This document shows positions 6,061 through 56,816 of a stretch of DNA of 64,000 nt, piece by piece (within the stretch, counting starts at the first letter, position 1; every line of letters begins with the position of its first letter). Both the position numbers and the translations under genes were made by a program. Under the pieces are notes generated by a model. That model searched no databases. It saw only the letters and a list, made by a program, of their open reading frames with translations, and was not told where the DNA came from. The stretch spans positions 454,644 through 518,643 of IMG/VR virus record IMGVR_UViG_3300017917_001342, one strand, 5' to 3'.

Positions 6061-6114
6061 CGCATAACTCGCCCCATTAACATATGGTATTAAACTATTT
6101 ATAGTACGAGTTAA

Positions 6115-6140
6115 ATGTACCGCCTAATGTGGCGGTACAT
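6115..6140 (-). terminator. Hairpin, probable terminator
   Basis: 10-bp inverted repeat atgtaccgcc/ggcggtacat just after the stop of the 6145..6372 gene. Confidence 0.55.
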
Positions 6141-6144
6141 CTAG

Positions 6145-6372
6145 TTACTGTTTTTGCGACAATGCAGATCGTTGCTGTAGGGCTTTAATAGCATCAGCAA
6201 TGACACGTTGATCGTCTGGACGCATGTCATTGATAGATTTAGGCATTCTTGGTGCACCTAGCTGTGTCAGTATTTGACCAATCCTTGCCCAATCGCAGCA
6301 CTGCTTATCATCTTGCAGATCGCCGCTTGCTATCATCATTTCTCTACCTAGATTCATATGGTCCATTTTCAT
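6145..6372 (-). CDS. Hypothetical protein
   Basis: ORF with AGGAG RBS in a tightly packed run. Confidence 0.6.
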   Translation of the reverse strand: MKMDHMNLGREMMIASGDLQDDKQCCDWARIGQILTQLGAPRMPKSINDMRPDDQRVIADAIKALQQRSALSQKQ

Positions 6373-6375
6373 CTC

Positions 6376-51800: not shown

Positions 51801-54800
51801 AACATTAACAATTCTGCAATCAGTACAAGCACAACTACAGGCGCATTAACAGTTGCTGGCGGCGCTGGCATTGTAGGTAACCTCAATGTTGGCGGTACTG
51901 TAATAAATGTTGCTGCATCCGGTGCTCGAATCATTGGTGATTTTACCAACGCTACTATCAATGGTAGAGCAATGTTCCAAACTAGAACTGCTAATAGCAG
52001 TACTAATGTTGGACTTATACCAAGTGGTACTGGCAACTCTGGCGCATTCATAGCATTTAATACAAGCGATGCAACCAATAGTGGTTATATTGCAATAAGT
52101 GCGTCAAATACCTCAGCAGATCTTGATTCTAACAGATCAGGAACTGGTACATTCCTGCCATTGGCTCTTAAAACTGGTGGCCAGACTAGACTACAACTCG
52201 ATACTGCTGGTAACGTTGCTGTATTAGGTAACCTAACTGTTAGCGGTAATGCTACTGTAAGTGGTATAACATCACTTGGTTCTATCAGCAACGTCAAAAT
52301 CACAGGCGGATCAACTAACTTTGTTATATCAACCGACGGTGCAGGTAACCTAAGTTGGGTAGCTGTTGCAGCGTTGCAGCAACAATTCAATGGTGGTACA
52401 ATTGGCAACGTATTACTCGTAAGTAACACAACTGTCAGTACCAGTACTTCAACTGGTGCTCTTATTACCACTGGTGGATTAGGTGTTGCAGGTAACGTCA
52501 ACATAGGCGGTACATATGTCAACGTTGCAACTAGCGGTGCAAGAATAACTGGTAACTTCAGTGATTTAGTATTTGCAAATAGACTGAGTTTCCAAACTGC
52601 ACAGGCTAACAACTATACTCATGTACAGATGTTACCAAGTGGCACAGGTGTCGAATCTGCTGTACACTTGTTTAACAACTCTAACCCTGCTAACGCAGCA
52701 ATGTTGTCGCTTATCAACAACAACGCAGAAGCAAGAATTGCCGCGGCAACTACTGGTACTGGTACATATTTGCCATTGCGATTCCATACTGGTGGTATAC
52801 AGCGTATGCAGATCGACACAGCAGGTGTTGTAAGTACTGCTGGTAACCTCAGTGTTGGTGGTAACCTTATTGTAACATCGCAGTCGCTATTGGGTGCAGC
52901 AGGTAACGTAAAAATAACTGGCGGTCTAAGTGGTTACGTATTGACCACAGACGGTAGTGGTAACCTTGCATGGAACAGCATTGGTGCATTGCCAGGATCG
53001 TTCAACGGCGGCACTATTACTAACGCACTTGTTGTTTCCAACAACACACTTAGTACAAGTACAACCACAGGTGCATTCCAAACCACTGGTGGTGTTGGTA
53101 TAGGTGGTAACTTATATGTAGGCGGTCAGACCAATTACATTGGCGGTAACCTAGTAGTAGCAGGTACCAATGCCAGTGTAAGTGCAACAACTGGTGCATT
53201 AGTTGTTACCGGCGGTGTTGGTATTGGTGGTAACTTGTATATCACAGGATCTAGAGTATCATTGGGTCCTGTTGGAAATGTTAATATTACTGGCGGTGCA
53301 ACTGGTCAGGTTATTACCACTGATGGCAGCGGTAACCTGTCATGGGCTCCAGTAAGCTCTCTAAGTCCGTTCAATGGCGGCACTATTACTAACGTATTGA
53401 TACAAAACAATACTACTGCTGCCACAAGTACAACTACTGGTGCTATACAGGTTGCAGGCGGTGTTGGTATACAGGGTGCTCTGTTTGTAGGCGGTGGTGC
53501 AAGCCTCGGTTCTGTATCAACATTGAAGATCACCGGTGGTGTTAGCGGCTATGTTCTAAGCACAGATGGCAGCGGCAACCTAACTTGGAGCGCAGTGTCT
53601 AGCTTGCCAAGCGGCTTCAATGGCGGTTCTATTACCAATGCATTGAATATTAGCAATAGCACAGTAAGTACAAACACTAGTACTGGTGCATTGATTGTCA
53701 CAGGTGGTGCAGGTATTGGCGGTGCCCTTAATGTGGGCGGCGGTGCTAACCTTGGTTCCGTAACTAACTTGAAAATCAGTGGTGGTTCTACTAACCAAGT
53801 ATTAACCACTGATGGTGCAGGTAACCTAACATGGTCGTCTGTTGCAGCATTGCAACAACAGTTTAACGGCGGCACAATTGGTAACATACTGATACAAAGC
53901 AACACCACTGCTGCTACAAGCACAACTACAGGTGCTATACAAGTCGCAGGCGGTGTAGGTATACAGGGTGCTCTATTTGTAGGCGGCGTATCAAACCTTG
54001 GCGCTGTTACAAACGTAAGAATTACTGGCGGTATAAATGGCTATGTAATGACTACAGATGGCGCTGGTAACTTGTCTTGGAGTGCAGCAAGTTCGCTAAA
54101 CGCCTTTAACGGTGGTACGATCGGTAACGCACTGATTGTAAGCAACAGCACAGTAAGTACCAGTACATCAACTGGTGCAATTGTAACCACCGGCGGTGTT
54201 GGTGTAGGCGGAAACCTAAACGTCGGCGGTCAAACCAACCTAGGTGCGGTTAACAACTTAAGAATCAGTGGTGGTATAAGCGGTTACGTTCTAACTACCG
54301 ATGGTGCAGGTAACCTAAGTTGGGGTGCAGGTAATGCACTTGTAAGTACATTCAACGGTGGTACAATCACCAATGCACTGTTCATCAATAACACTACAAC
54401 CAGTACCAGTTCTGTAACTGGTGCATTGCGAGTTGCAGGCGGTGTTGGTATTAGTGGTAACTTGTATTTGGGCGGTAGTGAAGTATTCCTTGGACCAGTC
54501 AGTGCTGTTACTATCACAGGCGGTGTTCCAGGATATGTTCTAACTACTGACGGTGCAGGTAATCTAAGTTGGGGTGCAGGTAACTCGTTTGTTACAAGCT
54601 TCAACGGCGGTACAATTACCAATGCACTCAATGTCAATAACGCAACTGTAAGTACAAGCACTACAACAGGTGCTATTACTGTAAATGGTGGTGTTGGTAT
54701 CGGTGGCAGTGTAAACATTGGTACAAACCTCAATGTAACCGGTGTAACAAGTCTCGGTGCAGTAACCAACGTAAAGATCACAGGGGGTTTAACAAACTAT

Positions 54801-56759
54801 GTTCTAACTACCGATGGTGCTGGTAACCTAACATGGAGTGCAGGTTCAAGCGTTGCAGGGCAGTGGACTACAAATACCACAGTTGGCGGTAGCGGACTAG
54901 ACATTTATTATCCACCGCTGACTCAGATCAGTGGTAACGTTGGCATTGGTACCAGTGTAACTACATCAGTTGGCGGTAGTAATAACCTGTCAGTTGGCGG
55001 TAACGTTTATGTACGTAGACAGTATTTCGCCAACGCAAGCGATACAGTGACATCGCCTAGCTATTCATGGTTGGGATCACCAACAACAGGTCTATACGTT
55101 GTTGCATCTAATACTATCGGTGCTACTGCAAATGGCATCGATGCACTGCGTATAGGTCCAAACACTGGTAACACATCAGTTGGTGCAACTAACCAAATTG
55201 CAGCACGCGGTGACTTCTATGCAAGCGGTGCAATACAACCAAGCAACAGTGCCAACTCAGCAGATAATACAAAAGGCATAATCTGGGCAAGTAACCCAGG
55301 TGGTGCAAGTGGATCTGCTTGGGTGAAATGGTATAACGGCGGTTTCAGCAGCTTGTATACCACATTGGAAATTGGCACTGGCTCTGATATTAAGAGTGTG
55401 CTGCTATTCAACACATCTGGTAACGTCGGATTTAACGTAACTGTTCCAAACTATAAGATAGATGTTGCAGGTGATGTTAACGTAACTGGTACATATCGCA
55501 TTAACGGTACACCGATTGGTACAGGTTCGGGTACAGTTACAGATGTAGGTATGACAGTACCGGCATTCTTAAGCGTGACACCTGCAAGTATTACTACGAG
55601 TGGTACATTTGCAGTTTCGCTAAGTGGCACTGCATTGCCTGTAACTAGTGGCGGTACTGGTAGAACTGCTGCACTCACAACCAATGGTGTGATCTACGCA
55701 GCAAACACTACCACAATGACTACTACTGCTGCTGGTACTAGTGGTCAAATACTAACTGCCAACGCAAGTGGTATACCAACTTGGAGTAGTACACTGCCAA
55801 CAACTGCTGGTGTAACCAGTGTAAGTTTTGGTACTACAGGCCTTACCCCATCCGCAGCAACAAGCGGTGCAATAACAGTTGCAGGTACACTTGCTGTAGG
55901 TAACGGTGGTACTGGTGTAACAGGTGTACCAACCAATGGTCAGGTATTGATAGGTAACGGTACAGGCTATACCCTAGCAAGTATCACTGGCACTGCAAAC
56001 CAAGTAACAGTAACACCTGGTGCAGGTTCAATTACACTGTCATTGCCACAGGCAATTGCAACTACAAGTACTCCTACATTTGCAACATTGACTCTGAACA
56101 ATGCAACTGGTCCAGAACTAACACTATCTGGCGGTACAAGCAACTTCATATTGATGGCTGCGAATGGTACTGCGGCACCTGCATTTAGTACTAGAAGTGC
56201 TGGTACCAAAGTAGTTTATTGGGATGCATTAGGTGTAGCATCTGCAGATTATGCAGTAGGTGTGCTAAACGCATCTTCAAGACTATGGTATTCGGTACCA
56301 ACTACTGCACACGGATTTGGTTGGTATGGTGGTACTACACTAGTCGGTACACTAAGCGGCGCTGGTGCATTTGCTGTTACAGGCGAAGTCACTGCATACA
56401 GTTCAGACGAACGTCTTAAGATCAATGTAGAACGTATACCAAATGCGCTTGACAAAGTTCTAACACTGCGCGGTGTAACATTTGATTGGGATCAAGACAA
56501 AGCAGCTAAGCTAGACTTCTTCCCACGCAAAGACAAAGACGTCGGTGTTATTGCACAAGACGTACAGCGTGTACTACCGGAAGCAGTTAAGCAAGCACCA
56601 TTTGACTTTGATCCTGCTGAAGGTGTAAGTAAGAGTGGCGAGAACTATCTAACTGTTCAATACGAAAAACTCACAGCATTGTTAATCGAAGCTGTGAAAG
56701 AATTGAAAACAGAAGTTGACAGTTTGAAAGCTGAAATTGATCAGCTAAAAAGCAAATAA
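48855..56759 (+). CDS. Giant collagen-like tail fibre with C-terminal intramolecular chaperone (peptidase S74-like)
   Basis: 2634 aa; long Gly-X-Thr region; ten TDG.G.L.W modules; [33 protein letters not shown]. Confidence 0.88.
49028..51500 (+). repeat. Collagen-like Gly-Pro/Ala-Thr coding repeat
   Basis: ggt-ccw-acw / ggt-gcw-acw triplets over about 2.5 kb with one interruption near 51040-51230. Confidence 0.9.
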
Positions 56760-56769
56760 TAACAAACAG

Positions 56770-56816
56770 CCTTTCCGCTAAATATCACAACATATTATGT
56801 GACATTAGCGGAAAGG
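56770..56816 (+). promoter_or_regulatory. Late promoter CTAAATA in the 5' arm of a hairpin that sequesters the RBS
   Basis: cctttccgctaa / ttagcggaaagg perfect 12-bp arms; ATG at 56824. Confidence 0.7.

Follow-up and report, generated by a model that had tools for sequence, protein, structure and literature searches.

Hairpins that may mask translation starts at TAAATA late promoters of an uncultivated 518-kb phage

The DNA analyzed here, referred to below as the window, is a stretch of 64,000 nucleotides (nt) that forms the final 64 kb (positions 454,644 to 518,643) of a single IMG/VR virus record of 518,643 bp (IMGVR_UViG_3300017917_001342) from an uncultivated phage of 518 kb. In this phage the hexamer TAAATA is best read, from its sequence context, as a -10-type late promoter of the T4 kind, and at about one third of the promoters an inverted repeat straddles the predicted transcription start. 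We consider it moderately probable that these repeats act by the promoter-in-hairpin masking known from the T4 genes e, soc and I-TevI. In the proposed scheme, host RNA polymerase carrying a phage-encoded gp55-family sigma factor would read TAAATA, and at roughly a third of the promoters the sequence upstream of or overlapping the motif would be complementary to the Shine–Dalgarno (SD) sequence and/or the start codon of the next gene. RNA entering from an upstream co-directional gene would then fold the initiation region into a hairpin and be poorly translated, and RNA begun at the gene's own promoter would lack the 5' arm and keep the initiation region open. The trick itself is already known from T4, and the case described here is real but not new in kind; with it, a mechanism for which proof exists at a few T4 genes is extended to an uncultivated phage of half a megabase that is only very distantly related to T4.

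The TAAATA motif, a gp55-family sigma factor and leaderless genes

The ends of the record overlap by 89 bp, indicating a circular or terminally redundant assembly, and its CheckV completeness is 100%. The guanine-plus-cytosine (GC) content is 40.7%. Long open reading frames (ORFs) are open under translation table 11, with no need for an alternative genetic code, and a megablast comparison of 6 kb of the window with cultured phages gave no match. Gene calls and start codons were obtained with our own crude caller, which yielded 654 genes genome-wide.

TAAATA is depleted two- to three-fold and belongs to the most avoided non-palindromic hexamers of the genome, with 22 occurrences in the window compared to 61±9 expected and 204 in the whole genome compared to ~398 expected under a fourth-order Markov model. 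Of these 204 sites, 97 lie at most 60 nt upstream of a same-strand gene start, whereas 4.4% is the baseline across hexamers. TAAATA is outranked in this position by two SD words only, AAGGAG and AGGAGA, which makes it the top non-SD hexamer there. The extended consensus is aTAAATAtc, with A enriched 5 nt after the motif (47 of 97 sites); no conserved element of the -35 type was found further upstream, and there is no information content upstream of position -2. In the window, 16 of the 22 sites face a downstream start codon 4–39 nt away, and the other six (1840, 14533, 24348, 26972, 30638 and 45929) are intragenic or antisense. The genes behind the motif include those for virion, fibre and adaptor proteins. 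The initial annotation of this DNA had listed 16 TAAATA sites before genes, all of which are real, although its plus-strand coordinates were off by 1–2 nt and should read 1313, 34451, 35229, 40810, 44048, 48823 and 56779.

Its view of TAAATA as a T4-type late promoter is borne out by the placement of the motif before gene starts and by the presence of a gp55-family sigma factor, which the same annotation had suggested looking for. The sigma gene (genome ~419800-420666, minus strand) encodes 288 amino acids (aa) and matches phrog_12791 with E=6e-84 and phrog_234, the T4 gp55 family, with E=6e-21, while the direct match to T4 gp55 is weak (E=3.7e-4). Its closest cultured relatives are found in Sinorhizobium phage Phosso (51% identity), Pseudomonas phage PA5oct (45%) and Erwinia Eneladusvirus (43%), and it adjoins an SbcD/gp47-like gene in the same order as in PA5oct. 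Searches of the complete genome for the T4 proteins gp33 (phrog_254) and gp45 (phrog_223) and for a beta clamp (PF00712) gave no match, although small, fast-evolving proteins can escape such detection.

The spacing between TAAATA and the start codon is bimodal, with 12 ATGs at 4 nt and 19 at 5 nt but no more than five at any other spacing between 0 and 11 nt. These 31 TAAATA-N4/5-ATG sites include 21 called genes of 45–809 aa, about a quarter of the promoters, with window examples at 13395, 40810 and 43175. An SD sequence is present in only 1 of the 21 ATG-fused genes compared with 49 of the 63 leadered genes. Transcription most likely starts 5–6 nt after TAAATA; the enrichment of A 5 nt downstream and the sharp TAAATA-N4/5-ATG peak support this placement indirectly. 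The peak and the scarcity of SD sequences fit such a start, which predicts leaderless late mRNAs, and about 21 late genes probably produce them. The arrangement is conserved in IMG/VR orthologs. An excess of N4/5-ATG spacing was not evident among the matches listed for PA5oct, Phosso and the Erwinia jumbo phage pEa_SNUABM_44. In the PA5oct record (NC_071039.1) the string TAAATAATG, with zero spacing, recurs ~15 times. Standard gene callers that seek an SD sequence will mis-start the ~21 probable leaderless genes, and the promoter model (aTAAATAtc with a start ~5–6 nt downstream) can be used to annotate late genes and their true start codons in this clade.

Two further features of the motif were noted. 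At 7 of 84 promoters the co-directional gene upstream has the TAA of the motif as its stop codon, as at window positions 13956-13961 and 13395-13400. Back-to-back or overlapping divergent TAAATA pairs occur at window positions 26972-26993 and 43993-44053 and at window-relative 171044/171054, and can be read as bidirectional late promoter pairs.

Stems across the predicted transcription start

Hairpins were surveyed at the 84 TAAATA sites of the genome that lie at most 40 nt from a called start, with the transcription start placed 5 nt after the motif. A crossing stem was defined as a perfect Watson–Crick stem of at least 7 bp, with a loop of up to 45 nt, that straddles the predicted start. Crossing stems are present at 27 of the 84 promoters (32%) and at 5 of the 16 in the window (binomial p ~0.03-0.06 versus background). 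By comparison, they occur at 63 of 553 motif-less gene starts with matched pseudo-starts (p=4e-6) and at 27 of 198 motif-less starts preceded by an intergenic stretch of 40 nt or more (p=4e-4). A folding energy across the start of -8 kcal/mol or lower was found for 30% of promoters compared with 12–15% of controls, and the probability that the SD/start region pairs with nucleotides preceding the transcription start is 0.40 versus 0.27 (p=2e-5).

One could suppose that this excess arises without selection, as a by-product of base composition, of complementarity between SD and anti-SD sequences at divergent pairs, or of gene-calling errors. Several of the 7-bp stems are indeed 0–14% GC with the motif itself serving as an arm, the gene starts come from a crude caller, and some of the matches that the same script returns in T4 (53/4, 51/26) are divergent promoter pairs in which the neighbour's anti-SD pairs with the SD. 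Yet when each site was shuffled so as to keep the motif and the dinucleotides, only 8.7±2.9 promoters acquired a crossing stem compared to the 27 observed (z=6.3; 0 of 100 shuffles reach the observed number). Comparison with shuffled controls, the kind of check proposed in the initial annotation, places hairpin frequency above background. When at least two GC pairs are required, the numbers are 18 and 4.4 (z=7.0). Intragenic TAAATA sites carry crossing stems in 9 of 71 cases (13%, p=3e-3), stems are rare at divergent pairs in this genome, and orthologs show compensatory changes (see below). An origin without selection is largely refuted by these controls, the covariation and the shuffles, and we regard it as very improbable.

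Stems confined to one side of the predicted start, whether upstream or downstream, show no enrichment over intergenic controls, and the effect is therefore specific to the crossing geometry. The entire 5' arm precedes the predicted +1 in 24 of the 27 crossing stems, and 13 stems have a 5' arm that overlaps the motif. Among leadered genes, the 3' arm falls inside the 16-nt SD-start window in 12 of 17 cases compared with 91 of 245 control stems (p=0.007). The start codon itself is within the 3' arm at 43175 and at window-relative -215124 and 145062. A terminator reading of the crossing stems was rejected, with a T-rich tract following only 3 of the 27.

Inverted repeats at promoters could also act at the level of DNA, where cruciform extrusion or easier melting would present TAAATA in single-stranded form and aid a gp55-type holoenzyme, by analogy with the promoters of the N4 virion RNA polymerase. 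The initial annotation had raised this as an alternative. Some sites look the part, with the motif in a short loop between perfect arms at 43175 (12 bp, loop of 8 nt), window-relative -215124 (12 bp, loop of 7 nt) and -237168 (9 bp, loop of 4 nt); in addition, the stems are mostly Watson–Crick and the sense and antisense folding energies are equal. The geometry of the collection as a whole argues otherwise. The loops measure 3–45 nt (median near 15), mostly too long for extrusion, and the position of the 5' arm relative to the motif varies from -30 to +15, whereas that of the 3' arm follows the SD or start. In longer helices with 1x1 mismatches, G·U is favoured over A·C by 15:4 compared with 33:32 in controls (p=0.036). 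Crossing stems occur at 24 of 58 promoters with a co-directional upstream gene but at only 3 of 26 with a divergent one (p=0.01), the latter being close to the 10% found for controls in both contexts, and two thirds of the promoters need no repeat at all. A DNA-level role is thus disfavoured, and we consider it quite improbable; the same lines of evidence favour a role in RNA, on the sense strand.

Another DNA-level proposal, in which a dimeric DNA-binding regulator would use the palindromes as operators overlapping the late promoters, takes its cue from the autorepression of I-TevI in T4, where the operator overlaps the late promoter (PMC2988022). The arm sequences share nothing between promoters and their spacing varies from 3 to 45 nt, and one regulator could not read them. 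The common-operator reading was rejected on this ground, and we find it hardly credible.

Hairpins, promoters and neighbouring genes in the window

Individual RNA folds in the window were compared with 200 dinucleotide shuffles each and are reported as z-scores together with the predicted accessibility of the SD/start region before and after removal of the sequence upstream of the predicted start. The four longest perfect arm pairs are located exactly where the initial annotation had placed them. The most stable relative to shuffles is the minus-strand hairpin at 43161..43192, with 12-bp perfect arms (43192-43181/43172-43161) that extend to 14 bp with a U-A and a U·G pair. Its 8-nt loop contains TAAATA (43180-43175) and its 3' arm contains the ATG at 43169 of a virion structural protein gene (42657-43169, minus strand, phrog_12928). 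The fold has a free energy (dG) of -22.1 and a z-score of -7.95, and accessibility rises from 0.0 to 0.9. This gene is probably leaderless, since its ATG comes 5 nt after the motif without an SD. The plus-strand hairpin at 56770..56816 also has 12-bp perfect arms (56770-56781/56805-56816), the 5' arm ending in the TAA of TAAATA (56779-56784) and the 3' arm running into an SD-like AAAGGGA before the ATG at 56824 of a 4593-aa ORF; here dG is -26.2, z is -7.63 and the rise in accessibility is moderate.

Two shorter perfect hairpins have 8-bp arms. At 11010..11039 (minus strand, arms 11039-11032/11017-11010) the 5' arm AATATCGT overlaps TAAATA (11041-11036) and the 3' arm ACGATATT is located between the SD TAGGAG and the TTG start at 11011 of a 96-aa gene, with z of -3.3 and accessibility increasing from 0.25 to 0.62. 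At 13931..13953 (minus strand, arms 13953-13946/13938-13931) the SD AGGA is in the loop and the ATG at 13934 in the 3' arm (z -3.2).

Among the imperfect hairpins described in the initial annotation, two fold beyond the shuffles. The plus-strand hairpin at 35209..35254 surrounds TAAATA at 35229-35234 and covers with its 3' arm the SD-like GGATGGA before the ATG at 35257 of an NTP-transferase gene (dG -15.0, z -2.4, accessibility from 0.33 to 0.57). The minus-strand hairpin at 30118..30159, with TAAATA (30147-30142) partly in its 5' arm, has the core UGCCGCC/GGCGGCA including one G·U pair, and its 3' arm abuts the ATG at 30120 of a collagen-like tail fibre gene (dG -13.2, z -2.2, accessibility from 0.28 to 0.52). 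A further hairpin, additional to those in the initial annotation, was found on the plus strand at 48798..48851, where a 7-bp perfect stem CTAACCA/TGGTTAG is embedded in a longer imperfect helix around TAAATA 48823-48828 (z -2.6). Its 3' arm lies in the SD-start window of a 2634-aa collagen-like fibre gene (ATG 48855) with Collagen and Peptidase_S74 domains.

In other metagenomic phages, orthologous promoters either retain the hairpin with compensatory changes or have it rebuilt from different sequence; compensatory evolution and repeated reinvention thus maintain the design. The virion gene behind 43175 has orthologs in five IMG/VR phages at ~73% amino acid identity, in which TAAATA remains in the loop with the ATG 5 nt downstream. 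The hairpin has compensatory changes at five base pairs, which alter codons 2–3, and 0 of 500 shuffles reach this. The 96-aa gene behind 11036 (window 10721-11011, minus strand) is a very conserved late gene with more than 597 IMG/VR relatives at 65–84% identity, although its protein has no Pfam or PHROG family. TAAATA is present at all 80 orthologous loci that were fetched. At many of them a non-homologous hairpin covers the SD or start with its 3' arm, and a few instead have the motif fused to the ATG. The difference in pairing probability for this family is modest (0.42 versus 0.33, p=0.003) and was obtained on non-independent sequences. Orthologs of a head-tail-adaptor-like gene (G000 392973-393725) likewise keep TAAATA, many with non-homologous hairpins occluding the SD or start, and some hairpins of the two families contain several G·U pairs; variants in the head-tail-adaptor-like family include a 13-bp perfect hairpin (locus L152) and a helix kept with three G·U pairs (locus L133), the latter being a further point against cruciforms. 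The hairpin at 13956 is not conserved in orthologous loci L093-L098. Searches for N-terminal orthologs of the giant ORF behind 56779 gave internal repeats only, and no relatives were found for the genes behind window-relative -215124 and 87588.

A number of observations weigh against masking of read-through RNA as the function of these hairpins. About two thirds of the promoters have no crossing stem, and several of the 7-bp stems are very AT-rich and weak. The orientation effect described above loses significance at a 6-bp threshold (p=0.24) or when pairing probability is used (p=0.18), and the comparison of sense and antisense folding energies, which could discriminate RNA from DNA, shows no difference. 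Gene calls and start codons depend on the crude caller. The hairpin at 13956 begins 2 nt after TAAATA (13961-13956), is mostly downstream of the predicted start and would persist in late RNA, with accessibility changing only from 0.44 to 0.52. Two of the hairpins put forward in the initial annotation fold at chance level. One is the 7-bp TAACTCG/CGAGTTA pair at 6065..6113 (minus strand), which is present in the sequence around TAAATA 6101-6096, upstream of a 61-aa ORF (ATG 6060), but has z of -1.5, with 17 of 200 shuffles folding as well. The other is the weak, interrupted pairing at 40790..40826 (plus strand) around TAAATA 40810-40815 (z -0.45), where the 58-aa ORF is probably leaderless, its ATG at 40821 following the motif by 5 nt. 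Leaderless genes such as those behind 43175 and 40810 have no ribosome-binding site to occlude, and an internal AUG that lacks an SD would be expected to initiate poorly in any case. Finally, 43175 follows phoH and 56779 follows the 2634-aa fibre gene, both of which have their own TAAATA promoters. These upstream genes being late themselves, masked read-through RNA at the two strongest hairpins would also be late, and early and late transcripts are not separable there. Across the genome, the immediate upstream gene has a late promoter at 3 of 24 hairpin promoters versus 10 of 33, a trend only, which fits the timing idea.

The lack of a ribosome-binding site in leaderless genes and the position of the two strongest hairpins behind late genes would sit better with hairpins that serve the upstream transcript as a 3'-end stabilizer, a site for RNase III or other processing, or a pause or insulator, with occlusion of the start being incidental; a role in timing makes little sense where the strongest stems follow late genes. 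It also fits this proposal that most stems come immediately behind a co-directional gene, from which a median of 36 nt separates them. We nevertheless consider it unlikely. The scarcity of T-rich tracts speaks against it, wholly upstream stems, which would be equally good stabilizers, show no enrichment, and the 3' arms are placed specifically over the SD or start, where orthologs rebuild the hairpin again.

A further reading, which we consider somewhat less likely than not, is a dual coupling of late promoters to translation in this megaphage clade, in which about a quarter of the genes would be leaderless, with mRNA beginning at or 1 nt before the AUG, and about a third would be masked by a hairpin in any upstream RNA, including RNA from late neighbours. 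Translation of each gene would then depend on RNA from its own promoter alone, and the outcome would be per-gene dosage or licensing rather than the early/late timing of T4. If so, orthologs that switch between a leadered form with a hairpin and a leaderless form would represent alternative solutions to the same constraint.

Among the remaining TAAATA sites that face genes in the window, the one at 1313..1318 (plus strand) is 29 nt before the ATG at 1348 and has no perfect crossing stem of at least 7 bp, with a moderate rise in accessibility; the one at 34451..34456 (plus strand) is 28 nt before the GTG at 34485, also with no perfect crossing stem. At 13395..13400 (minus strand) the TAA is the stop codon of the gene at 13398-13934, and a GTG 4 nt downstream starts a methyltransferase-like ORF (12800-13390) without a hairpin. 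The site at 26988..26993 (minus strand) is 33 nt before the ATG at 26954 of a 1592-aa ORF, with an imperfect hairpin upstream and an opposite-strand TAAATA at 26972-26977. At 30372..30377 (minus strand), ~30 nt upstream of the ATG at 30341 of a 60-aa ORF (30159-30341), there is no occluding hairpin and accessibility is unchanged at 0.61. The divergent pair at 43993..44053, which has no strong crossing stems, consists of TAAATA 43998-43993 (minus strand) before phoH (ATG 43976) and its partner 44048-44053 (plus strand) before a 1440-aa tail fibre gene (ATG 44081).

The structural genes of the window comprise virion proteins, the collagen-like fibres of 1440 and 2634 aa and the 4593-aa ORF across the join. 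The latter runs from window position 56824 to 64000 and continues past the window end across the 89-bp assembly overlap, and together with the two Collagen/Peptidase_S74 fibre genes it makes up an array of late genes that are giant in size. Besides PhoH, DnaJ and peptide deformylase, the window encodes a 407-aa protein resembling the RuBisCO large chain (36295-37518, plus strand; PF00016, 2.5e-39), for which the best relative with a solved structure is 2cwx, an archaeal form III enzyme (E=1.4e-41). It is located in a late-promoter-driven cluster (35257-40805) with NTP-transferase, DUF7796, family-2 glycosyltransferase and TPR proteins, a gene content that resembles a pathway for sugars or glycans and not salvage of adenosine monophosphate. 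The stretches 7460-10023 and 30723-34401 (both minus strand) encode what looks like a proteostasis set, made up of a MoxR-type AAA ATPase beside a DUF2201 metallopeptidase/VWA protein, a Clp/Lon-like ATP-dependent protease (phrog_4871), peptide deformylase and a full DnaJ. The region at 8–10 kb has 51% GC, with long ORFs open on both strands. Other words are also strongly avoided genome-wide, including AGCTCC/GGAGCT (2 sites versus 34 expected), CTGCAG (82 versus 554), GTGCAC and CAGCTG, which may reflect avoidance of restriction sites.

Comparison with known systems

Inverted repeats at promoters are shared with the early promoters of phage N4, which are read by the virion RNA polymerase. The N4 promoter hairpins have a short stem, a 3-nt loop and a fixed position, and act at the DNA level, whereas here the loops span 3–45 nt, positions vary, the arms follow the SD and two thirds of the promoters have no stem. 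Leaderless mRNAs from fusions of promoter and AUG are known for lambda cI, transcribed from PRM, and for the late TAAATG initiators of poxviruses. We know of no link between these fusions and gp55-type promoters, and the resemblance is an analogy only: a fixed short distance between promoter element and ATG and the lack of an SD are shared, and the polymerases and factors are unrelated.

Jumbo phages of the Rak2-like, PA5oct and Phosso type possess the closest gp55-like proteins, and the sigma-SbcD gene order matches that of PA5oct. The predicted late motif of CBB and GAP32 is ATAAATA; in CBB it is reported to precede structural genes, and CBB has no detectable gp33 or gp45, as in this genome (PMC5259590). 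Hairpin occlusion and leaderless late genes are not mentioned in those portions of the published accounts that we considered.

Late transcription in T4 employs the gp55 sigma factor, the gp33 co-activator and the gp45 sliding clamp. The present phage shares with it a gp55-family protein, an AT-rich box of the -10 type without a -35 element, and the location of this box before virion, fibre and adaptor genes. It differs in the length of its sigma factor (288 aa), in the lack of detected gp33 and gp45, in the fusion of about a quarter of the promoters to the start codon, and in its genome size of 518 kb. The core motif is TAAATA instead of TATAAATA; of the 8 positions of the T4 box, 6 are kept and the first two are not. 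T4 late promoters consist of a TATA box of 8 bp that precedes the start by about one helical turn (PMC2988020). Hairpins at late promoters are known for e, soc, 49 and I-TevI (PMC3014915), and hairpin control has further been described for I-TevII, I-TevIII, segB, mobE of phage Aeh1, 39, 25 and 26 (PMC2988022). In this type of control, folding keeps the long transcripts silent, and the 5' arm is missing from promoter-proximal transcripts (PMC3014915, PMC2988022). The 5' arm contains or adjoins the late promoter and the 3' arm contains the SD and/or AUG, and the same geometry can be read from the sequence here.

Applied to the T4 genome, the same script detects crossing stems at 11 of 21 TATAAATA promoters versus 30 of 212 controls (p=1e-4) and recovers e, soc, I-TevII and I-TevIII. 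Genes 24, 19 and segE also carry stems in T4, outside the lists in the portions of the published accounts considered here (PMC3014915, PMC2988022). The initial annotation had proposed a general timing switch in the present phage, which overstates the case, as about a third of the promoters have a stem, ~20 percentage points more than background, and the fraction in T4 is higher. The controls do reveal a statistically pervasive design, present at about one third of the late promoters here and at about one half in T4 by the same measure; it is the T4 design, and it is no more general here than in T4.

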